Assembly: GCA_946965045.2 (NCBI GenBank)
Contig: OX337229.1
Coordinates: forward strand, 5,766,001-5,830,000
DNA length: 64,000 nt
Source of the DNA: Epithemia pelagica
Taxonomy: Eukaryota; Protista; Bacillariophyta
Direction of reading: 5' to 3'
The stretch's first letter is position 1. Each line of letters starts with the position of its first letter. Below, piece by piece: positions 7,552 through 31,715 of the stretch. The notes under the pieces are model-generated. The model worked only from the letters and a program-made list of their open reading frames with translations, made no database searches and had not been told where the DNA came from. A program made the position numbers and the translations under genes.

Positions 7552-7972
7552 TTGTTGCTTCCCCGTGAACTTACTGTAGACGACGATGCATGCAGCAATC
7601 CCGGGTCAAGACCAAAGACAGACGGGCGCGAAATAGTTGTTATGCCCCAAATACACATTAACCCAGACTCTTTACTCGGAAGCACAACCAACACCAACCA
7701 TACGGGCACACGCACAGAAACAGAAGGAGACCGGGAAAACAAAAAAAAAGGAACCACAGAAGAGACAGAGGATTATAATATTCCATGGCGTCTCCCTTGT
7801 TGTCATCCCCTAATGAGACGAACGACAGGAGCCCACACCAACAAACTCAAACAAGATAAAGAATCGGAAATACACGTCGAGAGTCTCGATCCCACTCTTT
7901 CACCCCCCGATCCGTACCAAGACCCCACCAGTGGTTGTGGTGGCAGTATAATCATGTTTTGTCAATTGGTGC
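7552..7972 (+). pseudogene. 5' part of the small membrane-protein gene, cut by the retrotransposon insertion
   Basis: Nearly identical to 41593-42012 up to ...MFCQLV, then runs into element sequence. The intact copy continues LPFFCAY... Confidence 0.75.
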
Positions 7973-8165
7973 GTGTCTGTCGTGCTTACGTCGGAGCGGG
8001 GCAGTTGATCGCACATAGACTAGTACGAGCCCCACTGGACTTGGACATCTTTGTTGCGATGGACAAGCTCACAATTCTTGAGATTGCGAGCATTGCAACT
8101 GCATCCTCAAGACAAGGTCCACTGATAGATAGATCTAAGACTCTCAAAAACAACCTTGGTTTACG

Positions 8166-11036: not shown

Positions 11037-11598
11037 CGAGGTGCCGGGTTGATTGATGGTTCGGATAGAGTTGCTCCGTCCCCTTTTAACAATGCATTTT
11101 CCTCCTACTCGTCATCTCTCAACCCACCTTCTCCACCCATCCCTCGTCGGTCAGCGCAGCATTTCGACTCAAGTGATAATGATCCCATTATTTTACCGAT
11201 CCCCAAGGTCCCAGTTCCATTGATTCCCCGTGTCTTCTCCGATGAGAAAAGGATTTCATCCTCAGACGTTGCCTCCAAAATCTCGCCTCATGTCCGTTTT
11301 GTCCCCAAATTCCAAACGAAAATTTTCGACAAGATTGAGCCGGCGTGTGCCATACAAGATTCCATTTCCCCCAAGACAGATTTCGCGACCCCTTCCATTC
11401 TTCGTCGAAATTCTTCGGAGCCCGATCCTAATCTATCTCAGCTTGACAGTTCCGATGACCCTCCCCCAAACCCCCACCAACGCTCTTCTATTATGCCCCC
11501 AAGTTCACAATTTCTGGAATCCATCAAAGAAGCTTTAATTCGGAATTGCACGCAGGACGATTCGCCCTTTTCCCATTCGACATCTAAGGAAGGAACGG
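11037..11598 (+). pseudogene. N-terminal Pro/Ser-rich part of the YR pol frame, interrupted by the Plavaka element
   Basis: Same frame as gag after a single TGA. Joining 11598 to 30002 gives the in-frame sequence SKEGT-GPISLLRW continuing into RT. Confidence 0.65.
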
Positions 11599-11680
11599 TA
11601 CGCCAGTTTATGGCGGTTTAATTATCGATAAGAAAGCACCCCTAAGCGCATCCTACTAGAATCATCCGCGCGCAGGACAC

Positions 11681-11890
11681 GCGCACACCTACAAGAACAT
11701 GCGCACACCTACAAGAACATGCGCATGGCCCTTCCTCACGTTATTACTAAAAATGTGCTTTCCAGAACCAGCAAGCGCATGACCCACATTTCACCAACTT
11801 CAACACCATGCACAGTCAAGAACCAATAGTCATCACATCCCTCCACCTTCATGCACAGTCAAGAACCAACAGTCATCACATACCCTCCTA
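11681..11890. repeat. Left subterminal direct repeats of the Plavaka element
   Basis: gcgcacacctacaagaacat x2 (11681-11720), and catgcacagtcaagaaccaa(t/c)agtcatcacat x2 (~11807 and ~11850). Confidence 0.85.
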
Positions 11891-12088
11891 TGTATGCACT
11901 CATCCTTGATTGTGTCACATCACCATCATGCGCATTACTCCAGCATCAAGTGCAAGCAAGTTGAACACAGTGCATTTAACTAACACCATGCACACACTCC
12001 CACTAACAACCAGCGAATGAATGGAACACAATACATGTAGCTATATAGGAGTAGTATATGAAATGAAACCAATTGTCATTCTGATCAA

Positions 12089-14081
12089 TCACTGCCACGA
12101 CCGTTTTCGTGGCCTTTTAGAAGGCCTTGTCACAGCATCATCATCTGCATACCCCATTCGAGAGCGATATTGCCCATTGAGAAACATCATGAACCAGATA
12201 CCGCGGTCGCCTGCTCTGTCTTCACGAGCGATTTTCTCTTCCATATCCTCAAAATAGTCCATACCATCCTCATTCATACATCGACTTGAGTTCCAACTGC
12301 CTGAATATTTGAAGCGAGGATACCTTGCTGAGGATGTATCAATCATTTGATCAACACCATTTTCATTGTACCACCTTGGATTTAATTCAAATAGTTTCGC
12401 CTTGAAAGTGGTCTTGCCCATGTGAGTCCACACATCCCAGCAATCCACAAGGATGGTCAATATGAATGCCTCGTCACTTGAAGTGAATAACTTCAAGGCC
12501 TTTTCGCAATGTTCCTTTCCCTGCTGCTCAGTGTGGTCACCAAAATTGAAATCAATCACGGTTTTATGCATATTCTCACCATAGACACATGGACCAAACA
12601 ATTGCAAGAGATATGAATAGGGATAGTTGTCACACTTCTCTCCTCTCAATAACAGAAATTCTTCCAGGGTAGGCATTGGCCCAAAGTCTTCACAGTCGTT
12701 CAAAAGGCATGGATACCTCCGCTGGAAATTACTGTCACGCCATAGATCAAGACCCACATGTTCTAGATTCAGCAACAAATTATCTCACATCTCTTTATGA
12801 GAAGACGACATGATGAACCAACACATTCACTCTTCGATTGACACTTACTTATAAATGCTTTTCGCATGGAAGCCAGAACATTTGATCGTTTGCTTCGGAA
12901 CTTGTCAAGCATATAAGGTGAATGTTCAATCCACCACTCCTCTTGTTGTTTTGCATCCGTAATGCCTTTGCCTTTGAAATAGTGCTCAGTAAAATATGTT
13001 TTGCCATACTTCCCCCAAAGACCATTCGGATCTGCCTTAGTATCTTCGGACATGGAGAAATACTTGACATAACGCCATGCCACCTTCCGAACAAATGTAT
13101 CAAAGAACTTCTCCGATACCACCTCAGGCTTTTTCTTCGGCTTTTGCTTCTTATTCTTGTCCTTTTCGACAGAACCTTTGTGTGTAGTGGATGTTACAAT
13201 CGTACTTGTCGGGCAAGATGATTGATTATGGTGTACTGTTGTTGTCTGTGTTTCCTGTGCCAACTGATTTTGAATATCATCTTGTAGAAGAGTTTCCATC
13301 GCCTGATCAGGCCCTGTTGTTAGCAAAGTAGATGATGAAGATGACGACATATCCGAAAGGGAAGAAACGTCGTTAGCAAAGGTATCACCTGATGCATTCA
13401 ACCCACAAACACCCCCGTCATTAGAGCCGTCTCACCGACAAATTGTCCTCCTCTATTTTGTGCATCTAACAACTTACTGACAAGTCCTCCAGCAGGAAAA
13501 TGTCTCTCATTAGGATCAAAATCATCTCCATCATACTCACTGGGTCCATTGCCCATATTCTGCAATGCTCGTTGCATTTCAGGTCCAGTGAGAATATTTA
13601 CACCGACGTCGTCCTCCTCCATGTTATTAACTGCCGTGTTTGTTGGTTGCGCAAAACCAGATGATGGTTGTGTTCTCAGCCCACCCTGTTCATTATTGCT
13701 ATCATCTGCTGAAGTCACATCGGCTCCATCTCTTTCTGAATTTGTTGCCTGCTCCAAAAGATTACCACTCCCTTCCACAGTTGTGCCTTCTTGTGCTTGT
13801 GCTTGATCGTTGTTCATCGAGATCTGTTCCTCTTCTTCCTCGTCATCAGAACTATCTTCTTGGAGTACTAAACCTCCATTGGCTGCTGCAATAAGAGCAT
13901 CTTTGTTTGTAATTGTCCCGTCCTTGTTAGGAAGATTCTCTTTATTTCTTGTTGCCACTGCTGCCAAGATGCTTCTTCGTTGTCGTTCAACCTCTTTCTG
14001 ATTACTTCCATAGTTTGCATTTCGGACTGCTAAGGGTCGACGCCTCGTTGGAGCTGCATTTCTGGTGGTGACTCCTGCCAT
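12089..14081 (-). CDS. Three-exon accessory gene of the element (~605 aa, unknown function), divergent from the transposase
   Basis: Predicted exons 14081-13478, 13388-12849, 12762-12089. Introns GTAAGT...CAG (89 bp) and GTAAGT...TAG (86 bp), both phase 1, join three ORF-track fragments in frame. Motifs WW...KRSNV...M...F and SDEAF. Confidence 0.65.
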
Positions 14082-14645
14082 CGTTTATCTTGGATGCTCC
14101 GTCTGATTTATGACAAGGACGTGAACAAGAGCAGGGTGACAACAAGACCTCTGATGGACAACCATTCAAATTCAAACGCTGGAATGCTCCATGTTTGAAT
14201 CATAAACTCCGTGTTTGAACGATGGTCCTTTAGAGAACGTATGAAGATGAGCATAGGTGGTTTCAAGTACATCATACTTGTCAGATGGAACATTGGTACA
14301 TGGGTTTGAATGATTGTCATTTCCTTTCTAATGTCGACAGTGTCGGTATCCTCGGCATTGACACAGTGTTTGAATTCCAATCGCTGCTATCACCGTTGGT
14401 ATCTAACCCGGCAGGCTGGATTGGATTAAGTAAATACACACGACCGTTTGAAAATATTATGATCCGTTCATGTACATAAGCGATTTTCAGTCGCTTTTAT
14501 GCACCAACGTCGGCCGATCCACCCAATGCGGAGAAATTCTGATATATGCCACAAGATTGACCACCGATGTCTCAATTTGCAGAAATCGATTACAGAGCAT
14601 TTTTCATTACAAACCAAAATCTAAAACCACCAGCATCGTACCATC

Positions 14646-17600
14646 ATGGGCCAGCGTCGTAAAGTAAAAAAGAAGTTGCGAAAGAGATGCTCAAATACAA
14701 GCCAACAAGAGGAGTCCTTCATATCCTTTCAAGTGTGTCGTTTCTGTCAATCACGTTTCGATGCAAGAGGAATCAGCCGTCACGAAACAGTTTGTGAATT
14801 GAAAATGAACACCCAAAGGAAATGGCCAAATGTTGGCGATGACAACAATGATTGTGCCAGTAATATGAATGCTGATCCAATGAATATTGATATCATGGAC
14901 GATGAAACCACTATTCCGCATGCTGACCCACCAAAAGCATACTATGTACCTGGTGATACAGATAATATTATTCTGCGCAACAGCAAGGAGTGCCCGGTTG
15001 ATTTTCCTGCGTTCCTCGATAGAGATGGGAAGCAATTGAAACTTCATAAACACGATGCAGCCTTGGTCTCACTTATGATGTTACTTCGGAAAGCTGGTTG
15101 CCCCAAATATTTGTACAATTCGATCCTGGCATGGTCGAGTGACACATACTCAAGATGCGGTCCTGGGTTCTTCCTGGACAACCATTCAAAGAGGAAAACG
15201 TTCATCGAAAAGTTTTCTTCCAAAGGTTTCAATTATCCCAAGGCCAAATTTTTCCCGGTACCAATGGAATTCACCCAAAAACAGGGTGTGGTTGTACCAG
15301 AGAGTGAGAAATCAATAACAACACCAGTATTTGATTTGATCAGTCAACTACAGCGTGTATTACAAGATCCCGATGCAACCAAGAAAGAAAATACGATCCT
15401 CGATGATGACGATCCGTATCGTCCATATGTTCCAAACAAGCACATCCAAAATATACAAGACGGAGAAGTATTTTGGAAAACAGTGGAAAAATATAGAGAT
15501 GATCCAGATGCCTTCGTGGTTGGTCTTGTCTGTTATATGGACAAAACACATGCAACAGGGGATGGAAGATATACATCGGAGCCTGTTGTAATGGTGCCAT
15601 CTTTTCTAACGGAAACACAAATGAGGAAAGCAAGGCGACAGATCATCCTTGGGACTATTACAGACATGGAAAGAAAATCATCAGCGGCAAAACATATCCT
15701 CGATAAAGGGACTCCTTGCCGAAATTATCATGCTCAATTGACTAAGATCCTCGAAGGTCTTGTCAGTATCCAAAAACAGGAAGGTTTATGGATGAAACTA
15801 CGTCTCCATGGGATTATCAAAGTTGTCCGTTTGATATTGCCAATGATTGTTGTCAAAGGAGACGGGAAGTCTCAGGATAACCTTGCAGGTCGGTATGCCT
15901 CGCATCATCCAAGTGTTGGAAGACTATCATGGTGTTGCAACATTAAACCAAGGGATAGCAGATACCCATGGCATGAATGTTCTTATATCAATGCTGCAAG
16001 TACATACAAAATGTGCTTGAATGCATTGGGTCTTAATGAAAATCGAGAAAAACTGACTGAACAGGATGTTGATTACCAAGAGAGAGACAATGATACATTT
16101 TCGACTTTGACTGTTCCTACCTGTTTGAGCACATCGCAAGTAAGTCAAGAAAATAGCAGAGATGGAGGGGTCAATACTCTTGTGTCAGCTGCAAAAACCC
16201 AATTGCATGACATGGGACAGTATGCAGTCGATCTTTGTTTTTCCAAGGTTTACCTGGGTGAAGGAACCAATTCTGAACATGGGATTTTCTCGGCCAGTAG
16301 TTGTGATGTTCTTCATACATTGAAATCTGGGATAATGAGATACATCATGATTGACTTTTTCACGTTGATGACAAAAACTGAACGGGCCATGTTTGATTAT
16401 GTCTACAATTCAATCTTTCGGGCAAGTAGACAGACTGTATTCTCGTATTCATCGAAACTTGGATATCCCGGAACATCATTCTCGACCGGGATCAGTAACC
16501 TGTCAAAAGTAACTGCCAATGAGTGGGTTGGGATCATGTTTGCTTCAGCAGCTCTATGTGCCACTGCCAGAGGTCGCCTTATATTCGCGAAGAATATGGC
16601 AAAGAAATGGAACAAGGTGGTTGCGGAATGGAAAAAACGACAAGCAAAGCAAACATCCAAAACCACCAACAAGACATGTCAAGCGGACTTGGATCAAGTG
16701 CAAGAGACAAGTGAACCTATTGCTGACAATGAGGATGATACTCCACCAGATGAAGAGTACGAACGTACACGTCTTGATGATGATGATAGTGTTGACATTG
16801 ATATCACAGCTGAAACTGTTTTTGATGATGACCCAGTTGCTTACAGGTCTATCTGGGATGTTGATGAGCGGGAACCATACATAGACTTCCTGCATCTATT
16901 CGAGACTCTTTTGTGTTTCAACAGCTGGATTCGTATGGATACATTCTGGGAAACAGACCCAGACTCACAAGAAGGACAAACAACAGCATCCAAGTCTCTC
17001 GAATCAGTGCGGATTTTGATGGATGGCATCAGGAGATATGCACCCAGGCTCGATAAAAAAGGCAAATTGATGTCCAACGGGTGGATGATACCAAAATTCC
17101 ACAATCTCATACACATTATACAACAGATTCAGAATTTTGGACCAGCACGACTGCTTGATGTGGAGTCAGAGGAAAGTAATCATAAGGAAATTGTGAAATT
17201 GAATGCAAAAACGGTACAGAAACGTGGAAAAGGAATTTTTGAGTCGCAACTTGCAGAAAATATCTGGTGGATGCAAAGCTTGGAAATGCTGCAGGAAGCA
17301 ACAGGTCTTGAAGAAGATCATGTCACCTTTCTCCAGGAAGGGAAGTCGCCTTATGAAATAAGGAGAAAAAAGGGATCCCAAAACCAACTCCCTACCACAT
17401 CAACCTTGAATAGCCGTGGAACGGTCATAGTAGTATCCATGACCAGAGAAAAATGTTTGATTCCAGTACCTCACACGAACGTACATACTTCTGGTGATAA
17501 TCAAGACCAGTCATCAGATGAAATAGACAAGGATCTTCCGTCTCCATTGGGTATGTCGATTCAAGTTCCAGGCACGACCAGAAAAGAACAAGACGGATCA

Positions 17601-18503
17601 AACCGAAACCAGACGAATAGTGTACACAGGCGATTGACAGCAGCACCACACGAGGAGGATGTGGTATCAGTGAATATCGAATTCCATTCCAAAACAAATC
17701 ATGACATGACATTGCCACAGTTTTGTAATCACTTCTTTCGATTACATTACAAACGCTTTTTTCATCATATAGACGGGATGAGTGATGATCCAACAAATGA
17801 GACTTCAACCACACTGGAATTGTTCGGGAGCACAGAACTTAAGTTCGAAGACCCCAGGATAGGAAATATACGGGCTCATCCGAATTATCAAAGCGAGGGG
17901 CCATGGAGAGATTGGGTGATGGCTAAAGTTCCAAAGAAAAAAAGGAAACCTCTTGATGAGGTATACAACCAACCTCTCGGAGAATTTGATACCATCCTAT
18001 GTCAAACGATATGCTTCATTCAAATACCCATTACTCGAACAGACCACATACAAATGCAACCATCACCGGTATGTCAACCTTCAACTTCACCCGAGATGAC
18101 CCATGTCCTTCTCCGAACAACATATGTACGGAGTACAGCTGATATCGAGAAATCATCCGTTCTCTTTCAAAAATGGCGTAAGCGTTTTGACCTACATCGA
18201 ATAGCTGAAATTGTCATGGTTCCACTCCGGAATATTATTGAGGTTGTTGGTGTAGTGGATGAGAACCCAGAAATGATTCAAGACCGTGATTCTATCCCAA
18301 CATATTTCCATTCTTCACTTGAAAAAGATTTACTCCAAGAAGACAGTCGTAATTTGAGAAAGTTTAGTGACAATGTCTGGGCCGTACGCAACATCAAAGA
18401 ATGGGCTTCCGAATTCAATGAAAGTGCCCGTGACAATCTCGAGAAACGCTGTAATGAAATGAAAGAAAGATTGAAACAATCCGTCAGCAATTCGACGTCA
18501 TGA
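14646..18503 (+). CDS. Plavaka-family (CMC/EnSpm-related) transposase, intact
   Basis: 1285 aa. N-terminal CxxC...H...C finger, then YMDKT (first D), KGDGKSQD (second D), DVLHTLKSG, IPKFHNLIH...FG...ESEESNHK (E) and RAHPNY...WRDWV, matching the motif order of Plavaka transposases. Confidence 0.85.
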   Translation: MGQRRKVKKKLRKRCSNTSQQEESFISFQVCRFCQSRFDARGISRHETVCELKMNTQRKWPNVGDDNNDCASNMNADPMNIDIMDDETTIPHADPPKAYYVPGDTDNIILRNSKECPVDFPAFLDRDGKQLKLHKHDAALVSLMMLLRKAGCPKYLYNSILAWSSDTYSRCGPGFFLDNHSKRKTFIEKFSSKGFNYPKAKFFPVPMEFTQKQGVVVPESEKSITTPVFDLISQLQRVLQDPDATKKENTILDDDDPYRPYVPNKHIQNIQDGEVFWKTVEKYRDDPDAFVVGLVCYMDKTHATGDGRYTSEPVVMVPSFLTETQMRKARRQIILGTITDMERKSSAAKHILDKGTPCRNYHAQLTKILEGLVSIQKQEGLWMKLRLHGIIKVVRLILPMIVVKGDGKSQDNLAGRYASHHPSVGRLSWCCNIKPRDSRYPWHECSYINAASTYKMCLNALGLNENREKLTEQDVDYQERDNDTFSTLTVPTCLSTSQVSQENSRDGGVNTLVSAAKTQLHDMGQYAVDLCFSKVYLGEGTNSEHGIFSASSCDVLHTLKSGIMRYIMIDFFTLMTKTERAMFDYVYNSIFRASRQTVFSYSSKLGYPGTSFSTGISNLSKVTANEWVGIMFASAALCATARGRLIFAKNMAKKWNKVVAEWKKRQAKQTSKTTNKTCQADLDQVQETSEPIADNEDDTPPDEEYERTRLDDDDSVDIDITAETVFDDDPVAYRSIWDVDEREPYIDFLHLFETLLCFNSWIRMDTFWETDPDSQEGQTTASKSLESVRILMDGIRRYAPRLDKKGKLMSNGWMIPKFHNLIHIIQQIQNFGPARLLDVESEESNHKEIVKLNAKTVQKRGKGIFESQLAENIWWMQSLEMLQEATGLEEDHVTFLQEGKSPYEIRRKKGSQNQLPTTSTLNSRGTVIVVSMTREKCLIPVPHTNVHTSGDNQDQSSDEIDKDLPSPLGMSIQVPGTTRKEQDGSNRNQTNSVHRRLTAAPHEEDVVSVNIEFHSKTNHDMTLPQFCNHFFRLHYKRFFHHIDGMSDDPTNETSTTLELFGSTELKFEDPRIGNIRAHPNYQSEGPWRDWVMAKVPKKKRKPLDEVYNQPLGEFDTILCQTICFIQIPITRTDHIQMQPSPVCQPSTSPEMTHVLLRTTYVRSTADIEKSSVLFQKWRKRFDLHRIAEIVMVPLRNIIEVVGVVDENPEMIQDRDSIPTYFHSSLEKDLLQEDSRNLRKFSDNVWAVRNIKEWASEFNESARDNLEKRCNEMKERLKQSVSNSTS

Positions 18504-18698
18504 TCATAATTTGCCTCTATGGGGGGTTGTCACATACCAGCACTCCCCTCCTAATCTCCCCCCCAACCGTACGCGAGCCGACCAATTCAACTCAGAGTGT
18601 CACACACAAATTGGATGAAATAGTAGATACTTTCCATCGTTTTCCAAAAGTCATCCTCAGTCTTCAGTCAGTAAGGCTATTCTACTCCTCTTCAAACA

Positions 18699-19826
18699 AT
18701 GATCAACCCATACAAATCGAGGAAGAAAACAGTTCCACCCTTGGTGGTCAAACCAAACTTTCCAGTCACAAAGATACCTCCATCTAATGAAGAAATGATG
18801 ATCAACCCATACGAGCTAGAGGAAATAGAGACCCCCATGGTCAAAACGCACTCTCCAACCCCGAAAACTTGCGACGGTGAACATGACAAGAAGCCACCGC
18901 CTGCGTCCAAATCAATAATCAAATGTCATCCACTTCCGTCTTCTAAGCTTGATACCAAGGAAGAAGAGGAGAAGAAACTTCCACCAATCAAGCGCCCATC
19001 GTATCAGTTGATCCCAAACCCATATAAGAAGAAGCTCAAGGTTGCCGATCCATCTACTATTCCAATCTTGCTATTACATGACTCTCCTCCAATGTGTAAA
19101 CCAAGAGCAAACCGAGATAAGCTGCATCTCGAAGTTATTCGGTTCACTGAGCTTGTCAATAAAATCTATGGATCCAATGATGTTCCCCCAGAGCCAGTCT
19201 GTCCTTGGTGTTTTGTAACCGACAACCTTTCAACAGATCGTAGACTTACAGGAAAATGTTGGCATCGCTTCGGTAAATCTCTCTCATGTGCCGATTGTTG
19301 TTATGGTTGTGGAGTGCCCATGAACGGATGTGATTCAGGTGGGAATGAACGTTGTTGCACCGAAGCCCTGTATATCCATGATTCGATGAATATCACACGC
19401 GAAGAATCAGACATAAACAAGGTTCCATTGGTGTGTAAGTCTTGCTTAAGGCCATGCAATTCTTATTCAGAATGCGTCTTCTCGCATGGTTGTTGGAACT
19501 CTTGCAACAAGTACTTCGTCTGGCGATTCTGTCATATTGCTGGACGGGCGTTGGTGTACTCACAATTGAAGCCCAATTGCAAAGGACCAGGCACGATTCC
19601 CAAACATGCACAGGATATTATCAAAAACGCAACAGAGTTGATGTACAACGAACTGCGAGATCCGATGGAGTCTTCTCAGTACACATCTCCATTTTGTCAT
19701 GTTCTTGACCAAGACTCCTGGTCTAAATGGCTTGTCTCCATGTCTTTCGGTCGATACTACAATTACATGCCGTTCTTCCGTCATTGTTACACAGCCTTGA
19801 TGTCTTCATCGAAACCATTGTATTAA
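18699..19826 (+). CDS. Cys-rich putative Zn-binding protein (cargo, paralogue A)
   Basis: 375 aa, many CxxC pairs, C-terminal NKYFVWRFC...ELR...WSKWLVS...NYMPFFRHC. Confidence 0.7.
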   Translation: MINPYKSRKKTVPPLVVKPNFPVTKIPPSNEEMMINPYELEEIETPMVKTHSPTPKTCDGEHDKKPPPASKSIIKCHPLPSSKLDTKEEEEKKLPPIKRPSYQLIPNPYKKKLKVADPSTIPILLLHDSPPMCKPRANRDKLHLEVIRFTELVNKIYGSNDVPPEPVCPWCFVTDNLSTDRRLTGKCWHRFGKSLSCADCCYGCGVPMNGCDSGGNERCCTEALYIHDSMNITREESDINKVPLVCKSCLRPCNSYSECVFSHGCWNSCNKYFVWRFCHIAGRALVYSQLKPNCKGPGTIPKHAQDIIKNATELMYNELRDPMESSQYTSPFCHVLDQDSWSKWLVSMSFGRYYNYMPFFRHCYTALMSSSKPLY

Positions 19827-19887
19827 ACAAACTCTCGACTTCTTCGAAAGGCAAACTGGGAACAGATAACAAGATTTATAATATATG

Positions 19888-20955
19888 TCAATGATCATTA
19901 CCATCCATATTTCCACGTTCCAACTCCGCCGTCTCAGCCATTCTTTCGAGACAATTACGGAAGCACCTGACAAAGAGTGGCATGTAGTTGCGAAAACCAG
20001 CCGTAGAATGAGGCAACGAAAGCAACCATACTGCCCATGTTTTATCAGATGCTCGGGCATAATCGTATGGGGCACAATCGTTATCATCAAAATAGAAACG
20101 GGATCGCAATTCCTCAAGCCAAACGCTGCGGACAATAGTAAACATTGACCAGGTGATTTGACGGGGAAAGTTCACACCATCGTAAAATGATGTTATTTGA
20201 AAAGTACGCGCCACAATATGGCGTATGAGCATACAGAACTGCCACACGAAGTGCTTGTTCTCAGATTCCACACAGACACTGCATGAATCCAAATCTGGTT
20301 GTGGAATCCCAAAAGGTATTGAGCGTTCGGGAATTCGGAAACATTCCCTACACACCTGACAATGAAATGTTGGATGCCTGTGGCGGTGACATAAGTTACA
20401 ACGCATCAAAAAATTCTGCTGCCAGATAACTGAATAATCGAGATATGCCGCACGTGTTACCACTGTAGTATTTCCATGATTGCACTGGTGATGTGGTGTG
20501 GGACGACCAAGGATAACACAGTATGGACAGAGTTTCTCGCCTCTAAGCATTTCGTCCACCAACCGTTTGAATTCAGTCTGGATTTCATGACCGACACGCA
20601 TCTCTTCTCTGAGTTGTTCTATGACTTGTGGTACATCTTCTTCTTCATTATCGTAATCAAAAAAGATCCTCCCCGCGTCCCTGAAACAAGGCCGATCATT
20701 CACTTCCAAGTTCCTGTCGTTGATCGCCCGCATTTCTCGTCGTCGTCTACGTTCCCGAACATAAAAATCTTCTTCCTCCGATTCTTCTTCCTCCGATTCA
20801 TCTCCCGATTCATCCTCCGGTTGGTCCTCTGGATTGTCAGCCATTCTGTTTGCAGTCTCCTTCTCTTCGTTTTGCTGTGAATGCAAATACCTGTACTTGT
20901 TGCTTCTTCTTTGGATTTTTATGAAACCTCTGCTGTCATATGAACGAGAGTTCAA
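19888..20955 (-). CDS. Cys-rich putative Zn-binding protein (cargo, paralogue B)
   Basis: 355 aa, CPYC and further CxxC/H motifs, C-terminal NKHFVWQFC...ELR...WAVWLLS...NYMPLFVRC. Confidence 0.7.
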   Translation of the reverse strand: MNSRSYDSRGFIKIQRRSNKYRYLHSQQNEEKETANRMADNPEDQPEDESGDESEEEESEEEDFYVRERRRRREMRAINDRNLEVNDRPCFRDAGRIFFDYDNEEEDVPQVIEQLREEMRVGHEIQTEFKRLVDEMLRGEKLCPYCVILGRPTPHHQCNHGNTTVVTRAAYLDYSVIWQQNFLMRCNLCHRHRHPTFHCQVCRECFRIPERSIPFGIPQPDLDSCSVCVESENKHFVWQFCMLIRHIVARTFQITSFYDGVNFPRQITWSMFTIVRSVWLEELRSRFYFDDNDCAPYDYARASDKTWAVWLLSLPHSTAGFRNYMPLFVRCFRNCLERMAETAELERGNMDGNDH

Positions 20956-21436
20956 CTGGAAATAGATCCACGGATAACCGATCGGTCGCGTTTGTGTACA
21001 GAAATCGTCACACTATACTATTCACTGTGAGTATTACCACATACTGTGAGGATAAGTGTAATCATTCCCAACATGGTCGCGTTTCACTCGCTGGGCTGAC
21101 CTATCGGTGTGGCTTTGCAAAATTCCATGGACATGGAACAATGACATGCTTCTAGAACTCGAATAGCTCCAAATTTTCGTATAGACCATTTGGGTATCAT
21201 TTGCATGGACGGTAAAGGCTCTGAATTTGTCTATCATCAACCAAAAGACTTGCAATAGACCCTACCGGTGTGGTGTTGCCGTCGTCCCAAAATTCTATGG
21301 ACATGGAGCAAAGACATTCTTCTAGAAATCGAATGGCTCCAAATTTTCTAGAGGTCCTTGGGGTATCATAGGCATTGATTGATGGTAGGTAGTGGTTTTG
21401 CTGATAGGTGGGCATGGTCTTGTATATTAGAAATCT

Positions 21437-24400
21437 CTATTCGTCACTAGATTTCTGGTCCGACGCCAAGCCTCCAATTTCATGAGAATTGTCATCCTCG
21501 TTTTGTGTTACGGTAGCACTCAAAGATCTTGCATTTGTGCTAAAAAACCAACCAATCGTATGATTTCCCACATTCTTGTCTTTCGGTGGTATGGAGTGTG
21601 TATGGACAGATGTTCCATGTCTGATGATTCTCCCGTCCCATGCGATCGCAATGCCATGGAATAACCGGATACAAAGCCCATGATAAGTCTTGTCCTTATG
21701 CTTTATAAGGACATTGGGAAGGACGAAATACCAATTGTTGGTGCTGCCCGGGTTGGTTTCTGTCCAGATTGTAAAGGACACTGATGCATCATGAATATCA
21801 TAGTGGCTTGCATTCATCAAATCGCAACTCAAAATGATGGATGATGACACACCCCTTTCGTTTCCTCCCAATTCGTTTGGGACATCCAAACCGAAGTTTG
21901 TTTCCAGGTGTCTGAAAGCCGATAACACACCAGGGAATTTCCTCTCACAGAATCGCCGAACACCTCCACAGATTTTTGGCAATATATTCATCATGTTTGG
22001 AGATATTTTGAAAAGTTTGTCAGAAAAGAATGTACTTCTGCCACCCGTTTTTGTGCACACACCAACAGATGTCATGGTCCCCATATCACCATGGTTACAC
22101 CTTGCATTGGCTGATCTCTCTAGTGTACCGCTCTGCGCGAAGTGACATGACCTCTTGTGTAACAATGAAAGTAGGTTTTTGTCATTTTGCTGAAGTGTTG
22201 TCACTTTGACATGGCTGATGGTTTCGTTTTTACCCGCGTACCCACGTGTCCGAACAATGAATGTTGTATCTTCTCCGGTATCCCTTACATCAAACAGGAG
22301 CGGACGGACCGAAGTATCAGGCGGAGGGGACAGGTTTCTATACAATGCTCCATGGACGTACTTTCGGCATCCAGTCTTGTTAGCACTGGCTTTATTCAGC
22401 AGTGTTTCACGATACCACACTCTAAGAGAATGTTGGTCATTTGGTGTCATTTTTGGTCTGGACTTTTCACTTGTGTAATGATCAGGGGCCCAAAGTGGAG
22501 AACCACTTTCAACATCAGACGCTTGGTAGCATTCATGGACAACTCTCTTTGCACTTTGTGTCCAATCAATACACCAACACTTGATAACCTTTTTGAGGAA
22601 TGCCCCACCACTTGGTTGGCCGTCGGAATGTCGTAAGCGCAGCCAGGATATAGGTAGTGCTACCAAAGATGAAGTGCATTCCGATGTTGCATACCCAGTA
22701 TTCATTATCATTGCCGAAGTATAAAAAATACCGGCCAAAGGGATGATAACGATCACGTCATGGAAAATATGGTCCATACAATCATCACAGTTTTTCTTGG
22801 ATGTGCGACAATGGAAGATTGTATCGTCAAACGCAGACCACACGGTTTTGGGGTATTTCCGATGTCCCTTATGTCGTTGACAGCGATTCAGTACACATTC
22901 TACCAAGAAGGCACATGGAGACCGGGTTGTTAAGAACTTCGGGTCACATTCTGTCACATGAAGCTTGTTGTCTTCGAAACAACAATGGCTTGCTGGATCT
23001 TCCGTCACCTCACCAACCATGTCTTTCATTTGTTCGTATATGTTAGGTAATTTTCCCATGATTGTCTGGAGGTCTGTTGGTGTGATGTCGTAGTCTTTCA
23101 GAACCTTTGTATAGCAGATGCCGAACATTCTCCGATCATCATTGCTACTGAGACAGAGTGATAGTAAGTCGCGTAGTCTTTTTGCTACCTTGTCCATGTC
23201 AGGAATTCCAAAAAAACACATTTCTGTATGATCGGATTCATTTGGTTTGGAGAATTTTGTCGTCAAATGGCTAGGTTTCTCAGCCTGTCGTCTCTTATAC
23301 TTCTTCATCGTTTCATGTGTTAGTGTCAACTTCGATAGGCCCTCTTGTCGTCGTTGCTTGTTCGTGGGTAGTCCCCTGGATGAACCAATGGTCTTACATT
23401 CTTTTCTTTTCCTTTCCGGTGAAGTATTCTGTTCGTCAGTATCGTCATGATTACCGTGTATTGGAGATTTGTGAATCTCCTTCGTACCTCGTTCGTCTTG
23501 TATGCGCTGATCCGTTTGTTTTGTCGTGTTGATGCTACTTCCCTTGTTATGGTCGTTTTTTGTCATTTGGTCATCGTTGTTCTTGTTGCTACCTTTTTGT
23601 TTGTCTGTACTATCCTTTCCTTCTTTGGTTTGTGTCGCATCATCTTGGTTGACACTGTCATTGTGACAGCTAGACGGATTATCACTGTCAGGTGTGTTGT
23701 TGGCATTCTTAGACCCGTTCTCTCCAGAATTTCCGTGTTGTTCGTAAGCAACAATCTCTTGCTTGCCACATTCCTTGCCCTTTTGTTTGTCTGTAGAACC
23801 GTTGCCATCTCTGCTTTGTATCTCTTCTCCTTGTCCACATTCATCTTGGTGACTGGAGGTTGCTTTCTGACCGCTCTGTCTGTTCCGATCATCCCTCTCC
23901 TGATTGTCCTTGGAATTCCAACCAAGTTTGGATAGGCCATCCTGCCCTCCACGACTCGCTGTAGTGTGATGAATGTCCTTTTCTCTCTCTCTACGAGGTG
24001 ATTGATTTGGTTGACTATTACCTCTATCAGTTGAGGGACGGTTAGGCTCTCTCTGACGGGTACGCCTAGAATGATCGTTGTGTCCAGGATGACTGTCTCT
24101 AAGTGACAAATGGTGCCTGGAATGTTCGTTGTATCCAGGGAATCTCTCCCAATCCATCGGATCCATCGGATGTCGATTAGACCATTGATTGTGGCTATCT
24201 CTATATACCAAATGGTGCCTTGTATGTTCTCTCGAATGTTCGTTGTATCCAGAGAATCTCCTCCAATCCATCGAATGTCGATTAGACAATTGATTTTGAT
24301 TATCATGTCTTCTTTTTCTATCCCGGTAAGTGTTTTCCATGATTTGATCTCTTCTCCCTCTAGACTCGTCTTGGTGGTTATCATGGTATCCATGTTGGTC

Positions 24401-27400
24401 TTGTCGTTCAATGACTCCTCTTCTAGTTTGTTGGTTATCTTGATCGAAATGTGAATGACGAGACACATGATAATCCGATGTATTAGATCCTCTCGATCCT
24501 GGATGATCATCATTGAATCGATTCTGTCCATGCTTACAAAACACTGGCCTGTCATGTTCAGGTAGCGAACCCCACTCATTTGTTCTGGGGCTTCGAGTTG
24601 TCGACAGGACGTTGTTCAGATTCCGTCCTCCCCACAGCCCATGTGGATTCTCTCTCTTGTCCTTGGTTCTTTCGTTATCATGTTGGGTTTGCTCTGTTCT
24701 ATGTCTTTCTTCGGGCAGCTCACTCCGGTTACCCCAATTCGCAGGCATTGCAACGGAACGTGATGAGTTATTTCCTCCCCATTGCTGGTATTTAGGCTTC
24801 TCACCCTCTGGTGACTGATAGATTGCTTTGTGTTCAGAAGGATGAGTATATGTTCTTTGAACAGAACGTGTCATAGGACAGAAGTACAATAGACTTTGAA
24901 TATCCTGGCTGCACACCATACATGTGTTGTGGCCCCGCTGCATCCAATCTCCAACACATTCCCGACAAAATGTATGTCTACAAAGAAACAGTTCGCAATC
25001 CACTTTTCTGGTCATACAAATCGAACAAACCTCGGGCTTGTATTTTGTCTCAACTCCTCTTTGTTCTAGTGTTGATGGCTTGTTACTCACGGGTGATTTT
25101 TTTGATGATTCTTCAGGGCGTCCCTCAATCATAGTTGTAGTGTCTTTGACTGTTTTCCTATGTCCCTCTTCAGGGAATCCCTCGCTCGTAGTTGTAGTGT
25201 CTTCCGCTGTTTTCTTGTGTCCCTCTATCTTCTCCGCACCAAACATGTGGATGTTACTCTTGATCTTTTGTCCACACTGGGGACACCATACATTATGATA
25301 CTTGAACCGTATTCGTAAGCAATTTCCGTGAACCAGATGTCCACATGGGATGAGGGTACAGACTTCGCTGTCTGTATCTGTTTTCAATGCCCTGTTACAG
25401 CATACACAAGAATCTGGACAATATACAACGGTCGGTAGCAATCGATTTATATCTCTCTTGGAAAGTTTGGAGTCAAGTAACACCTCCTTGGGTTCTAATC
25501 CCACCCTCGGGCACGGTATGAACAATATGTCACCATCCGTAGTCCACGTCTCTGAACACCCACCATCAGATAGATCGACGTTCTCCTGGTATTCGTATTT
25601 ATCGGTACCACGTGAAAACCCCACTTCAACAGGATCGTCGTCGCTGTTGCCATTGAAATTGTCAGGTCCCAACACCAAAGGAGAAATCGAATTGCCTTCA
25701 ACAGCATGCTCTAGTCCTCTCGAAAATTCATTATTGTACCGTATTTGATTACTCGAAAAACAATTGGATATCGTCATACTCTTGTCTATCTGACCTTCTT
25801 TCCGACCCGGGTTTGGTCGACTACTCATTATGTTTCCAAGCATTCTGATCACAATAGCTTGTGGCATTGGCTTTGGAGTATCCTTCTTAGGTTCTGGCAT
25901 TTTCACAATGCGATATCGCCACTTGTTATATTCCTTGTTTGTATCATGTGTTGTTTCATCTTCTTCCACTAATGATGGGTCATAACATAGACTGACAGGC
26001 GGGGCACCTTTTGACGTATTGACCAGGTCCCATTTCCGTAGTACATGACGCGTCGTTCCTTCCCAGTATTGGTCTGATCGATTATGTATTGGTTCGTAGA
26101 TATGAAGTATCTTTTTGTCGATTTCGAAAGCCAATAAAGCTGGGTCGCTGACATCAGTTGCTGTTGTCAAGGCAATGATCGCCAATATCAGTGTGTTCGG
26201 ATCCTGTTGTCTCCACGATGACATAGGAATTTTCTTAGGAAATGGGTTCCTGTTTGCTTCATCAAATGTTACTTTGTCAACATATACTAGGTTCTGATGG
26301 TTGTGATGGACCATCAATTTCAAACAAGTATAGAAAGACTCAATCGGCATGCCCACCCTTGAAGTGTTGTAGCAAAGATCTCTCCGACGATGTCTATGTG
26401 GGATATGCAAAACACGCGTTGTAGGGTCCTGGTCATTCATCAACCCACTGTAAGACATGCATAGTGTGCACCTAAATAATGTCTTGATTTCGACATGCGT
26501 GTTGTCCTTCCCCATACTCTTAGCATACTGGGTTGCTAGCTTCATGGCCGACTTGATGTTCTCGTTGTTTCTGTTAGTTTGTTTTTCCGCGAACTTGTCC
26601 AAGTAACCGTCACCAATGTTGTCGATTAATTCATTCGAGTCCCATGAGTCTTTTCTTCTCTTCTGGTTTACTATAGGATCAAGAACGTGTGGAATTTCAA
26701 TGAAAGGCTGTGGTACCACACCATCACCTGTCTCCTCAATTCCCTTGTTTATGGAAGCACAACGTCTCTAAGACAAAGAGATCAATCATTTTTGAGATTG
26801 TCTAATCCTTCTCGATTCTTGGCAAGTCGCTCGAACATCTTACCTCGTTGTCTGCGGTTTTTTCATTGTCGTCGCTTATAATCTTCCTGACCTCTTCCAC
26901 ACGGTCTGATTTGAGGGCAACTTGGTTCGACGTTGTAATGGAAGTTGGTAGTACTTGATCCTTTTTCTCGTCAGTAGGATCATTACCAGCGACGACCTTC
27001 TGTCTCTTTTTTGCCGGCGAGTCTATACTCCGACGTTGCACGGCAATTTCTTTCGATTTCCTGGCAGACAGTACCTCTTGTTTTTCTATATAATGCAGTA
27101 GATCGTAGAACATACCGCCATCGTCTCCGTTTCTTCCATATTGTACCAAAGGATCTCTTTCTTCAAGGTACATCTTGAACCATGTGTCAGGCATCGTATA
27201 CAACAGTGCTTTCTCCATTTGGATATTGGAAATCACGTCCATGTTCTCGTCCGATGTCGATTCTGAGATGAAACGGTGTATGGCCACCATATGTTCGATA
27301 ACCCATGCGATTTTACCAACAGGTACGAGACGCGGTTTCCTGTAAAGGGAGGAATCATCTAGAAGGTATCGTTTCAATGCTTCTCCAATCCCACCGATCC

Positions 27401-27968
27401 CCTTGCGTGTCTTCTTAGAGACTAAGCCATGAGAGGAAAGAAATCTGATAATGGTTTGTCTCAGATTCTCAGCACCGTCTATCACTGTCGTCCCAAATGC
27501 CTGATTCCAAATATTGGAAACAGGACTGTAGAGAGTCTTTTTGAACAACAGTCGAGCAACCATTGGAGTCAACTTGTCATCATCATCCATCTCGTTCTTA
27601 ATTCTTGTGAAACAGAAAACGGAGTGACAGATGATATCTTGGAATGCAGGCGAATAACAGATTGGTAGGAATATCTTCACATAATGGCCGTCATGTGGTA
27701 CCTCCACTGTTGTCCATTTTCCTGATTTGTCTTGGAATACACTTTCATACCAATTGAGGACACTTTCGTATGTAATGGGCATAATACCGGTGTAGTGAGA
27801 TTCCTCGCTTGTGTGTGTTCGAAGTGTATGATTGGTACCAGAAACAGTCATAGTCGACACGTCCTTTCTTTTGTTTCGCACTTCATCATTCATTGAAGAA
27901 GGGTCACCAGGATTCTTGGCGGTCGGTGGTTTTTTGTAGCGAGGGCCCTTGATGCGGTTGCCCGCCAT
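21437..27968 (-). CDS. Spliced multidomain protein (~2151 aa): unknown N-terminus, possible inactive Ulp1-like region, RING-H2, RING-HC, low-complexity region, C-terminal TET/JBP-like 2OG-Fe(II) dioxygenase
   Basis: Exon 27968-26844, phase-0 76-bp intron GTAAGA...TCTTAG (26843-26768), exon 26767-21437. RINGs at 25274-25408 and 24911-25027. NASHYDIHD (HxD at 21797-21805) and RHGTS (His at 21617-21619), preceded by GDMGTMxxxG. Confidence 0.72.
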
Positions 27969-27985
27969 TTTGTACTTGTCACGAT

Positions 27986-29282
27986 GCGCTTTTTGTGTAG
28001 CGTCTTTGTTTCAACAACAACAACAACAAGGGTAGTCGAGGAAGCGCTTTAATTGTAGCGTCTTTGAGACAACCTTGTGTACTTGTCTAAACAGTAAAAA
28101 GTGTGCGCTGAATTGTGTAGCGTCTTTGGTTTGGTCCTGAACTCTGGTGGTAACAAAACAACAACCAAATCGAAGGAATACACTACGACGCGCTTTATGT
28201 GTAGCGTCTTGTTCGTTGTGATCCAAACAATCGGTGCCAGAATTTGCTACTCCAAAACCAGGGGTTGGTTGGTTGTCCAAGCAATCTCGCGACAAGAATA
28301 GAACAGAAGCAACTGGCTACCACCGTGTCACACTGCTTGCTTTGGGTCTGTTCTATTCAAGTCCGAGTATCACGAGGACAGGAGGGTTCTTGATAAACAA
28401 TCTAACAGATAGCCCGAAACCGCTTCAATTGTAATAGCGTGATTGGAGTGAAGGACAGAGCTGAGTGAAACAAGCAACAATCAGACAGATGCCCCAAGCC
28501 GCTTTAATTGTAGCGTGGTGATTGGAATGGCAGAGCTGCAAGATAGTGCAAGTGTCAAAGATAGGACAAATGTCGACAATATTTCGAATGCTCTGGTGGT
28601 CGTTCTTCTTCTTGGGTTCCTCTTCTTCTTGTTTTCCTGTTGTAGCGGTTTTGGAGTGAAGGTCGTGGTTGAAAGGAAGCAAGCAACAATCAGACAGATG
28701 CCCCAAGCCGCTTTAATTGTAGCGTGATTGGAATGGCAGAGCTGCAAGATAGTGCAAGTGTCAATGTCTCGAATGCTCTGGCCGTGCTTGAGTTCCTCTT
28801 CCTCTTCTTCTGGTGCAGCGGTTTTGGAGTGAAGTGTTGTAGCGGTTTTGGAGTGAAGGTCGTGGTTGAAAGGAAGCAAGCAACAATCAGACAGATGCCC
28901 CAAGCCGCTTTAATTGTAGCGTGATTGGAATGGCAGAGCTGCAAGATAGTGCAAGTGTCAATGTCTCGAATGCTCTGGCCGTGCTTGAGTTCCTCTTCCT
29001 CTTCTTCTGGTGCAGCGGTTTTGGAGTGAAGGTGGCTGAAGAGGAAGCAAGCAACAAAAAGGTGGCTGAAAAGGAACCAAGCAACAATCAGACAGATGCC
29101 CCAAGCCGCTTTAATTGTAGCGTGATTGGAATGGCAGAGCTGTTAGGTTGATGAAAGAAGTTGGATAGGTGAAAGGATTGAAAAGGGAATCTCGGCAGAG
29201 AGAAAGCAAGCAACAAAAAGGTGGCTGAAAAGGAACCAAGAAACAATCAGACAGATGCCCCAAGCCGCTTTAATTGTAGCGT
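27986..29282. repeat. Array of 10 CGCT-N8-11-AGCGT mini-palindromes; the last five sit in a longer degenerate tandem unit
   Basis: Copies start near 27986, 28044, 28105, 28190, 28421, 28500, 28709, 28906, 29107 and 29266. The unit caatcagacagatgccccaagccgctttaattgtagcgtg occurs five times. Confidence 0.9.
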
Positions 29283-29998
29283 GATTGGAATGGCAGAGCT
29301 GTTAGGTTGATGAAAGAAGCTGGATAGATAATGGGATTGAACAGGGGAATCTCGATAGCGTTGGGTGATCGATTGTTGTTGTTGCTGCTGCTGTTGTTGT
29401 TGTTTGTTGTGGTGTGTTGGGTGGAGGTGGAGGGAGATGAATGAGCATCGATTCTGGTGGTCGTTGATTGTTGAATGACTAGTATGCTAAGTTGTTCGGT
29501 TTTGTTCGATGGATCAGAGTGTCGAGTTGGTAATCCCCGCGGTTTGGGTGATTGGGAAGGAGGATCCATCTGAGACATTCTTTGGGACATCCATGTGCGT
29601 CAGTCTTTCTGGCAGCTGCTGTGTGATGTGGTGGGAGTGGAAATTCGTGATTCAAAGGTGAGGGGACAGACGCTTGCGCATGAGGGTTGCGTCATGCGCG
29701 TCTCGGGGGGGTCGAGCGCGCCAGATAGTTGTAGTGCGCATTATCGGAGTGTGGCGCGCGTTATTCGTGGTTTGATCGCGGGCTTGTGCGCATTAAAATT
29801 GTGGCATGCGCGTGATAGTCAGCTCGATCTCTAGAACTAGCTAGAGAAATGTGCATTGTTAGACCTAGATTTGCAGATTTAGTTGGGAAAGCAGGATTAT
29901 AGTTAAAAACTGCGCATATAAAAATAAACTGCGCATAAAAAATTTTAATTCGGCGAATTTTTTCTAGAAATTCGCTTTTGGGGGTGGAAATCAAGCGC

Positions 29999-31715
29999 CG
30001 GGGCCCATTTCCCTCCTTAGATGGAATGATTCCCCAATTATTCCATTCGGCAAACCTCGTCCACTTGGTTCCCCATCCCCTACGATTTCCTCTGACCTTT
30101 CAGGGAAATCGCTACAGAGAAACCTATCACGCCTCCAAAACGAACTAATTGCTGGTGAAGAAATGCTAGGTGAGTCTAATTCTTCCGATCCTCTATCTAC
30201 TCCCGAGAACCCTAGTTCTCCTCCCGTTGACTTTCGGGAATCTCTTCCAAACGACCCAGCGATAATCTTTGTCAACAAGATCCCACGGCCACCCAAGAAT
30301 CCACCCAAACACCTCCATTCCATTACCACCATCAAGTCCATTTGTTCGTCCATTGTACCCACGCCGTCACCATCCCCATTCCGACATGAGACGTCCGAAT
30401 CAGCTGCCGAATTCAACTCCAACTTAATCGCAAGCTTTGATCACAATCTCCAACGCCTTTTCAACGCATACCCAGGGACTACGATTAGTCCTGGCTCCAA
30501 ATTTCGTCCATTGAGTTCTATTGCCCCACTGTTACGTCACCATCCGTTCTGGGACACGATTCAAGATACTCTCCGCAACGGTGCACATTACGAATTCAAG
30601 GAACTCCCACCTGACGAAGACAGACAACGAGAGAATGACGCTATCCTCGCATATGGGAACCACGCGTCCGCGCGATTACGACCCGATGCCTTAGTGAAAG
30701 TGTGCAAAAAGGACACTCGATTTGGATATGCCTTCCCCATCACTTTCGATTGCGCGCGGTTGTTGGATCAAGGCCGTGCAGGCCCCTTGGGAGTCGCACA
30801 GCATCCTGGTATCGATGAACATGGGAACATTATCGTCAAAGACCGTCTTGCCCACGATCAATCCTTTTCGCTAGGCTTCGCCCCGTCTTTGAATGACCTT
30901 GTTGACGAATCAGGCCTCATTGATTTGGTGTTTGGTTGGTGCATCGATCGCATCATTCACCAGATTGTTGCGTTGCGCATTAAATACCCCGACAAGCGGA
31001 TTCTGGTTTGCAAGTTTGACTGGGGGTCGGCCTATCGTCGCATCAATGGTGACGGTATCCTTACATCCAACACCATCACAACGGACGCAAGTGGTGATTT
31101 TGCGAACCTTCTGACGAGGCTCTCATTTGGGGGCCGCCCCCACCCAGCGATGTTCAGCGCCTTCTCCGAGGCTGCGTGTGACTTATGTAACGACATCGCC
31201 GATGTTGATGAATGGACTCCCGAAGTTTGTCGTTCTCCACTGCAAGACTTGATGGGGGAGATTCAGAGGATTGACGACTCGGTCCCTTTTGCCCCCGGCC
31301 TCCCGCTAGCGGTCGACGTTGACGCCCGCCCACAAGGATACCATGATGTGTATATTGACAATATGGTACAGCTGTTCTTAGACTGCCAAGAACACCTCCG
31401 TCGGGCACCCGGCATAGTCCCACTGGTTCTCCACATGCTCGTCCGCCCTTCTGCACCAGACGAACCAATTGACAGGAACGACATCCTCGCCGCGGATAAG
31501 ATGAAGGCGGAAGGAGCCCCATCGGAGGAAATGCGTGTCCTTGGTTGGCTGATCGATACGAGGAGATTGTTGATTCGGCTTCCCTTCGATAAATACACAT
31601 GTTGGTCTCGCGAAGTTCGCGAATGGCTCGAGCCCAAGCGAACATATATCACGTTCCGCGACCTGGAGAGTCTCCTGGGGAAGATGGTTCATGGTTGCAA
31701 ATGTATACCCCTTGC
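29999..31715 (+). pseudogene. YR (DIRS/Ngaro-like) reverse transcriptase, right part; truncated and catalytically mutated
   Basis: RT motifs KDRLAHDQSF, KFDWGSAYRRI, LSFGG, VYIDNM (YxDD changed to YIDN), LGWLIDT. The sequence breaks off at 31715 into host duplicate DNA. No RNase H core or recombinase follows. Confidence 0.8.

Follow-up and report, generated by a model that had tools for sequence, protein, structure and literature searches.

Two long open reading frames (ORFs) follow each other, head to tail, along the minus strand of the DNA analysed here, a 64,000-nucleotide stretch of Epithemia pelagica contig OX337229.1 (GCA_946965045.2, positions 5,766,001 to 5,830,000), which we call the window. 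The first, ORF1, encodes 388 amino acids (aa; 26802-27968) and the second, ORF2, 1760 aa (21437-26719). Together they raise three questions: whether two RING fingers and a TET/JBP-like dioxygenase are really joined in one protein, to what kind of genetic unit the gene belongs, and what such a protein might do. We consider it probable that the two ORFs form a single spliced gene of about 2151 codons and that this gene, whose inferred role is to counter silencing, is the cargo of an 18.4-kb transposon of the Plavaka type, recently active in an apparently diatom-like genome.

The gene model was read from the sequence and from comparison with three further copies of the locus (L002-L004) and with a diverged paralogue from the same assembly (L001). 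Exon 1 comprises 375 codons from the ATG (26844-27968, minus strand) and encodes a domain of unknown function, delimited by the ORF and its conservation in L001 and without a Pfam match. The donor GTAAGA starts at 26843, directly past codon 375 of the 388-aa ORF (phase 0), and the pyrimidine-rich acceptor TTGTCTTAG ends at 26768. The predicted 76-nt GT-AG intron between them (26768-26843, minus strand) includes the stop of ORF1 and closes with the stop triplet from which the ORF2 frame opens. That frame is open for 16 codons further upstream, as far as the acceptor; exon 2 (21437-26767, minus strand) thus consists of these 16 codons and the 1760-codon ORF2 with its stop, and the spliced product has 375+16+1760 = 2151 codons. 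The exons were searched separately, and the joined protein was neither searched nor folded.

Public gene calls divide the locus into products of 388 aa and 1699-1757 aa, RNA lends the splicing no support, and contigs of three public runs carry the intron. These observations would suit two separate proteins, the 388-aa ORF on its own, with its stop inside the intron, and a RING-TET protein of about 1700 aa started at codon 59 of ORF2, the first ATG in that frame. We regard this as improbable. The split calls come from prokaryote-style callers that ignore introns, the acceptor AG coincides with the stop opening ORF2, and the donor falls exactly on a codon boundary. Moreover, the stretch of ORF2 ahead of its first ATG (codons 2-58) is kept as protein (..LDNIGD.YL.KFA..) in L001, where the intron is absent and one continuous frame runs through the exon junction.

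L001 is collinear with both exons, at 35% identity in exon 1, 41% through the first RING finger (RING-A) and 49-59% in the C-terminal part. The start of exon 1, MAGNR..KGPRYK, is kept there (35% identity over 347 aa), and the paralogue itself is decayed, with three in-frame stops and one frameshift. In L002-L004, the intron is present with its splice sites and shows single-base changes only. Both exons are stop-free in all four DNA copies (the window and L002-L004), and the sole indel is an in-frame one of 9 nt in the linker. As for the three runs, their contigs are fragmented and their variants are 95-99% alike, as expected for a repeat. Since the runs holding the locus are DNA-like and not RNA, the case for one gene is comparative. 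It supports a single coding unit of about 2151 codons in two exons. The sequence features of the 76-bp phase-0 intron are those claimed in an earlier note on this DNA, and what backs the splicing itself is comparison; the single protein of about 2150 aa claimed there agrees with the 2151 codons, the continuous frame of L001 and the conserved codons ahead of the first ATG of ORF2.

Selection was assessed from pairwise ratios of nonsynonymous to synonymous differences (pN/pS) among the same four copies. The whole gene gave values of 0.27-0.45. Exon 1 (0.08-0.28) and the TET domain (0.07-0.28) were lowest, and these two segments are under the strongest constraint in the gene. Higher values were found in the N-terminal part of exon 2 (0.31-1.35), in the RING segment, which has very few changes (0.26-0.78), and in the linker, whose ratio was the highest of the large segments (0.35-0.75). 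The low pN/pS indicates that selection preserved the function of the gene as the family multiplied.

The unit that spread is far larger than the gene. L002-L004 align to the window end to end over 11581-30023 at 97.7-99.5%, and their flanks are unrelated, which delimits an element of 18.44 kb. Its termini, CATCTAAGGAAGGAA and TTCCCTCCTTAGATG (CATCT..AGATG), form 15-bp terminal inverted repeats (TIRs) with 14/15 positions matching; a default inverted-repeat search did not report these, and they were found by comparing the ends of the copies. Target-site duplications (TSDs) of 2 bp flank all four copies (GA, GA, TG and TG). PlavakaB, the branch of Plavaka with TET genes in fungi, has CATCA..TGATG termini and 2-3-bp TSDs (Kojima 2025, PMC12730594), and the termini and TSDs of our element fit this description. 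At 90% protein identity, ORF2 forms a cluster of 47 members, spread over many contigs of one ENA assembly, and 6 of the 15 members listed are full length. These dozens of near-identical, still intact copies point to a live system and not a fossil.

Every copy also carries a 1285-aa ORF (14646-18503, plus strand), probably a DDE transposase. It is homologous (E 4e-26; 22-30% identity) to a 1263-aa gene at a locus from another sample (L005), which likewise is unannotated and adjoins a 28%-identical TET-like member of the family. By eye, the 1285-aa ORF has the motifs YMDKT, KGDGKSQD, FHNLIH and ESEESNHKE (D, D, H(3)H, E) and no clear CxxC; DDE transposases of the Plavaka/EnSpm type carry C(2)C and H(3-4)H motifs. 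Taken together, these findings show that the gene is cargo of a multi-copy, recently active Plavaka-type (CACTA/EnSpm-related) transposon and not a host regulator. Consequently, any coupling of ubiquitin signalling to base oxidation by its product is best read as a putative counter-silencing device of the transposon.

Transposons with such cargo have been described in two other groups. The closest parallel is formed by the fungal TET-carrying transposons, especially PlavakaB (Iyer et al. 2014; Kojima 2025, PMC12730594). They belong to the same cut-and-paste Plavaka lineage related to CACTA/EnSpm and share the CATC-type termini, the 2-3-bp duplications, a TET/JBP-fold accessory gene and a proposed escape from methylation silencing. 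In contrast to them, the host here is apparently a diatom-like alga, and the element, at about 18.4 kb, holds several extra ORFs. Its enzyme has HxD in place of the HxE of the 'PE-type' enzymes borne by fungal Plavaka, and it goes unseen by Pfam Tet_JBP. The same protein also contains two RINGs, a linker of about 550 aa and an unknown domain at the N-terminus. The second parallel is the giant Plavaka of the red alga Bostrychia (preprint, bioRxiv 10.1101/2025.02.11.637652), a non-fungal element of 17-19 kb with accessory genes PAG1-3, one of which has a 2-oxoglutarate (2OG) oxygenase domain. Its repeat arrays adjoin the ParB-oxygenase gene, much as the array at 28638-29354 of the window lies just upstream of our gene. 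As compared by description, PAG3 combines ParB with an oxygenase and PAG2 a methylase with SET, whereas the partners in the window are RINGs.

We then considered the enzyme itself. The dioxygenase domain occupies ORF2 aa 1254-1760 (21440-22960, minus strand). An AlphaFold2 model built on an alignment of 61 family sequences reached a predicted local distance difference test score (pLDDT) of 90.7 and a predicted TM-score (pTM) of 0.91; with a 7-sequence alignment, pLDDT was only 49.8. Foldseek ranked human TET2 first (E 5e-10), followed by CMD1, CcTet, NgTET1 and then FTO. VIA-align likewise gave the highest Z score to TET2 (19.4 over 287 residues, root-mean-square deviation 4.1), followed by NgTET1 (16.2), CMD1 (15.6) and CcTet (15.4), and the next family, AlkBH3/FTO, stood at Z <=11.7, a clear gap below the TETs. 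In the Atlas, a feature search placed PF12851 on 24/30 matches, and the matches of the fold search include phage Tet_JBP and basidiomycete Tet-like clusters; the Atlas cluster nearest to the protein is mostly Bacillariophyta, which is the basis of a tentative assignment of the host to diatom-like algae. A TET/JBP fold is thus established by modelling for the C-terminal domain, as had been proposed for it. A word-index search with this domain returned six relatives, and a profile search of a library of 1.84 billion proteins returned 1222 representatives at E <=1e-3, with 320 at <=1e-30.

The iron site was located from conservation, with residues numbered as in ORF2 and counted over 61 family members. 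The HYDIHD motif (21788-21805, minus strand) supplies the iron ligands H1639 and D1641 together with D1644, all three in 61/61 members. The distal His lies in RHGTS, where R1700-H1701 (21617-21622, minus strand) is conserved in 59/61 and 61/61, respectively, and H1701 is most likely the third iron ligand. S1631 and G1689 are conserved in 61/61 members and R1540 in 60/61; the latter is possibly equivalent to TET2 R1261 or CMD1 R244. The stretch GLCIRLFHG..RIIRHGTS aligns gap-free, with the same 13-residue spacing, with what we take to be the corresponding stretch of TET2, GVAIAPAHG..RRELH1881ATT, which we treat as a lead and not as a test. The numbering of this TET2 stretch agrees with the residues cited in PMC7854593. 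An alternative register, in which HMMER places CMD1 H397 on H1688 and R410 on R1700, would make H1688 the third ligand and R1700 the canonical 2OG Arg. We consider it less likely, as 12/61 otherwise intact relatives have D, S, K, Y, N or Q in place of H1688, whereas H1701 is invariant and is followed by GT in the same way as CMD1 H397.

The residue three past the iron Asp bears on the substrate. This Asp or Asn bonds N4 of 5-methylcytosine (5mC) in CMD1 (D350), NgTET1 (D234) and TET2 (N1387) (PMC7854593), and the invariant D1644 therefore argues for a cytosine-type substrate. TET2, NgTET1 and CcTet share with the window enzyme the fold, the HxD...H motif, the Asp or Asn contacting cytosine N4, and an Arg upstream of HxD that may equal TET2 R1261. 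They differ in that identity is 8-13% and in that the window protein lacks the strand-VIII Arg (RxS motif), has large N-terminal elaborations and carries no Cys-rich or CXXC domain.

The same residue weighs on the possibility that the protein serves transposition or target choice. It might, for instance, mark or open the chromatin of insertion sites, or ubiquitinate and so remodel the transposition complex, and the dioxygenase might act on RNA or on a base other than cytosine. The fold family does include enzymes acting on thymine (JBP) and on N6-methyladenine (CcTet, PDB 7w5p), nucleic-acid demethylases of the AlkB/FTO type are the next-best structural matches, and RINGs have no known role in demethylation. 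Nevertheless, the Asp three past the iron Asp, invariant here, reads cytosine N4 in NgTET1 and CMD1, and according to the authors of the CMD1 study it disfavours thymine (PMC7854593). We give a role of this kind little credence, and 5mC stays the substrate assumed in our reading of the gene as an anti-silencing cargo.

The co-substrate pocket departs from TET2 in the direction of CMD1, the vitamin-C-dependent 5mC glyceryl transferase of Chlamydomonas. In TET2 and NgTET1, 2OG is held by R1261/R1896 and R224/R289, respectively, whereas the position of the second TET2 Arg is taken in CMD1 by W358, which blocks 2OG through a clash with its C5-carboxylate (PMC7854593). The 61 members have no conserved Arg past the distal His. 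At the place of TET2 R1896 and NgTET1 R289, an Asn is found in 47/61, six residues ahead of the conserved aromatic F1725, as R1896 stands relative to Y1902 in TET2. Since the strand-VIII Arg is replaced by Asn, 2OG dependence and the reaction product are uncertain. A profile of the domain core had CMD1 as its sole sequence match in the PDB, a weak one (E 0.058, 16 bits). Its alignment places HxDxxD on H345/D347/D350, W1652 on W358 and F1665 on F371. W1652, 13 residues past the iron His, is Trp in 53/61. HGT from H1701 on corresponds to CMD1 H397-G-T399, and the Thr at the second position past the distal His equals T399, which contacts vitamin C. Common to both proteins are thus HxDxxD, the Trp, FVLP and the distal His-Gly-Thr; CMD1, in contrast, is a host gene without RINGs.

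These likenesses raise the possibility of a CMD1-like chemistry, in which the enzyme would use another co-substrate, e.g. ascorbate, and leave a bulky 5mC adduct instead of 5-hydroxymethylcytosine, with the architecture of the protein unchanged. We find it doubtful. The structural match to TET2 (Z 19.4) exceeds that to CMD1 (15.6). R1697 and R1700, ahead of the distal His, are conserved and might replace the missing strand-VIII Arg; together with R1540 they could hold 2OG from other strands. Other 2OG oxygenase subfamilies do hold 2OG from other strands. The HMMER register, moreover, sets CMD1 R410 on R1700, and the roles of the residues were read from sequence and not from model coordinates. 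What can be said from these positions is that the enzyme departs from the canonical pattern in its co-substrate site but keeps it in the iron site and in the residue that contacts the base. A bolder idea, which we think rather unlikely, is a bifunctional epigenome editor. The clade of 1222 representatives to which the dioxygenase belongs would write a non-canonical, possibly ascorbate-derived base modification, because it lost the 2OG Arg and its co-substrate pocket has a Trp like that of CMD1. At the modified site, chromatin or host silencing factors would be ubiquitinated by the fused RINGs.

The RING fingers are the second unusual feature of the protein. RING-A, of the RING-H2 type, spans ORF2 aa 438-482 (25274-25408, minus strand) and was found by regular expression and Pfam. 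RING-B, of the C3HC4 type (RING-HC), spans aa 565-603 (24911-25027, minus strand) and was found in the same two ways. All eight ligands are present at canonical spacing in both, RING-A reading C-x2-C..C-x-H-x2-H-x2-C..C-x2-C. Pfam support is above the cut-off, with zf-C3HC4_3 at 2.2e-7 for RING-B (31 bits, where the cut-off is 27) and zf-RING_2, matched in two stretches, at 2.7e-9; RING fingers were the only matches in the Pfam scan of the protein. The spacer between them contains a tandem duplication of 57 nt, or 19 aa (25110-25226, minus strand; 2.1 copies with 83% matches in Tandem Repeats Finder). Downstream, a low-complexity linker (ORF2 aa ~613-1166; 23222-24883, minus strand), defined by composition, is rich in R, H, D, S and N, as in its part at aa ~700-900.

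All nine long members of the ORF2 cluster have the two RINGs and the catalytic motifs intact. In L001, RING-A is conserved and RING-B is a remnant (..CDHCFCRQC..CPKC), which indicates that the fusion is older than the split of the two paralogous lineages. The RING pattern occurred in 0/152 other representatives of the dioxygenase family, and we found no description of a RING and TET-fold fusion in the literature. The claims that had been made for this part of the protein, namely RINGs of the H2 and HC types, a long linker and an unusual pairing with a TET-like domain, were borne out.

From these elements we propose the following mechanism. The protein consists, in order, of a constrained N-terminal domain of unknown function, a possible dead Ulp1-like region, RING-H2, RING-HC, a disordered basic linker and a TET/JBP-fold dioxygenase. 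The dioxygenase would flip out and modify 5mC on its own element or nearby DNA, and the silencing mark would thereby be erased or hidden. Through a recruited ubiquitin-conjugating enzyme (E2), the RINGs would ubiquitinate the protein itself, chromatin or silencing proteins of the host. For exon 1 we propose a possible role in targeting, because a 197/159-bp tandem array lies directly upstream. The net effect would be that the element stays transcribed and mobile, as has been proposed for fungal TET-carrying transposons, and in this way the protein probably helps its element to escape silencing by DNA methylation. The Arabidopsis transposon VANDAL encodes a protein, VANC, by which the methylation of VANDAL's own family is lowered. 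The analogy with it is conceptual, as VANC is an unrelated protein and not an enzyme of the TET fold.

Several observations weigh against this reading. The anti-silencing role is argued by analogy, and 5mC as the substrate of the dioxygenase is deduced from sequence. The public runs with the locus, three in all, consist of contigs that behave as DNA and retain the intron, and both splicing and expression of the gene are predictions. Pfam includes a Plavaka model, and the 1285-aa probable transposase had no Pfam match up to E 10. Pfam PF12851 (Tet_JBP) was matched by neither the window protein nor 60 relatives; it was also missed with the whole ORF, with segments and with a 117-aa core, and the domain had no Pfam match up to E 10. 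Against the PDB, whole-domain profiles gave no TET-family match, one returning nothing and the other only chance matches to seed storage proteins, and a search with the single protein returned nothing. The 2OG Arg of strand VIII (TET2 R1896, NgTET1 R289) has no counterpart past H1701. Finally, RING-B has no basic residue directly after its last Cys, and the ubiquitin ligase (E3) activity of the RINGs is a prediction.

TET-carrying transposons in fungi and giant Plavaka elements with oxygenase cargo in red algae were already known. New here are the host group, apparently diatom-like, the combination of two RINGs with a TET fold, and a clade of TET-fold proteins, more than 1000 representatives strong, that Pfam misses and whose co-substrate pocket is non-canonical. 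These results open the questions of how algal transposons evade 5mC silencing and whether CMD1-like chemistry extends beyond one green alga.

Upstream of the RINGs, ORF2 aa 94-330 (25730-26440, minus strand) is a candidate degenerate Ulp1/C48-like region. The earlier note had suggested a fold of the Ulp1/SENP type without the catalytic His and Cys. By eye, Ala, Glu and Thr occupy the triad positions and L001 likewise has no His or Cys there, in an alignment that is itself unproven. The fold is a lead. An Atlas feature search based on a language model placed PF02902 (Peptidase_C48) on 23/30 of the nearest clusters, with a borderline score of 0.93 and 168 shared features, just below the 170 that true members typically share; no Peptidase_C48 signal came from the region in Pfam, in phmmer against the PDB or in hhalign. 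Word-index searches, run with the ORF at full length and with the 430 aa at the N-terminus, as well as phmmer of the N-terminal parts against 169 proteins, returned only the element's own copies. DPALL, EP..NRS and PKPMPQAIV.R.LG are conserved with L001, and these motifs common to the paralogues indicate that the region is constrained. A catalytically dead Ulp1-like fold is possible.

A relative of the dioxygenase, P0083 (L005:295-5514, sample ERZ28668934), is a 1739-aa TET-fold family member in a related element. It has no RINGs and contains a Gly/Arg/Asp-rich repeat linker. By eye, it shows an Ulp1-like His..Asp..Cys arrangement (..NPHMVLL..VYDCG..NHCGANV..), a protease that no tool confirmed. 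Its N-terminus was tried as a bridge between the window protein and Ulp1 and was rejected, with BLASTP against the window N-terminus at E 17, an hhalign probability of 0.3% and nothing from Pfam or the PDB.

The element has some further features. Two tail-to-tail Cys-rich ORFs of 375 aa (18699-19826, plus strand) and 355 aa (19888-20955, minus strand) are present in every copy and have no Pfam match, and the element further holds three small ORFs. The end of L001 contains a piece 84% identical to the 375-aa ORF. Just inside the left terminus are subterminal tandem repeats with 20-, 23- and 43-bp units (11677-11899); such repeats are common in CACTA-type elements. The array upstream of the gene (28638-29354), between its start codon and the right terminus, consists of 2.5 copies of a 197-bp unit overlapping two copies of a 159-bp unit; it might serve as a promoter or as a platform for binding.

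Two side observations concern the wider family. The tail of P0001, the L001 protein, has about 580 aa of PPKDSEQAT-type repeats past the dioxygenase domain (L001:11100-12862), absent from the window gene. A 607-aa family member, P0003, was found on 22 metagenome contigs (L006-L008), in a gene order resembling that of the element, with small ORFs, a 1066-aa ORF, a 358-aa ORF and the TET-like gene; the 1066-aa ORF had no match to the window transposase at E 1e-4.

Lastly, the flanks of the window element (7972-11146 and 30040-30869) resemble neighbouring sequences in L004:1690-6138 at 66-84% identity. The gap is about 440 bp in L004 and about 450 bp in the window. As these flank-like sequences are adjacent in L004, like a diverged empty site, the window copy seems to be nested in another repeat. 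The repeat unit that hosts it carries ORFs of 956 aa and 567 aa.

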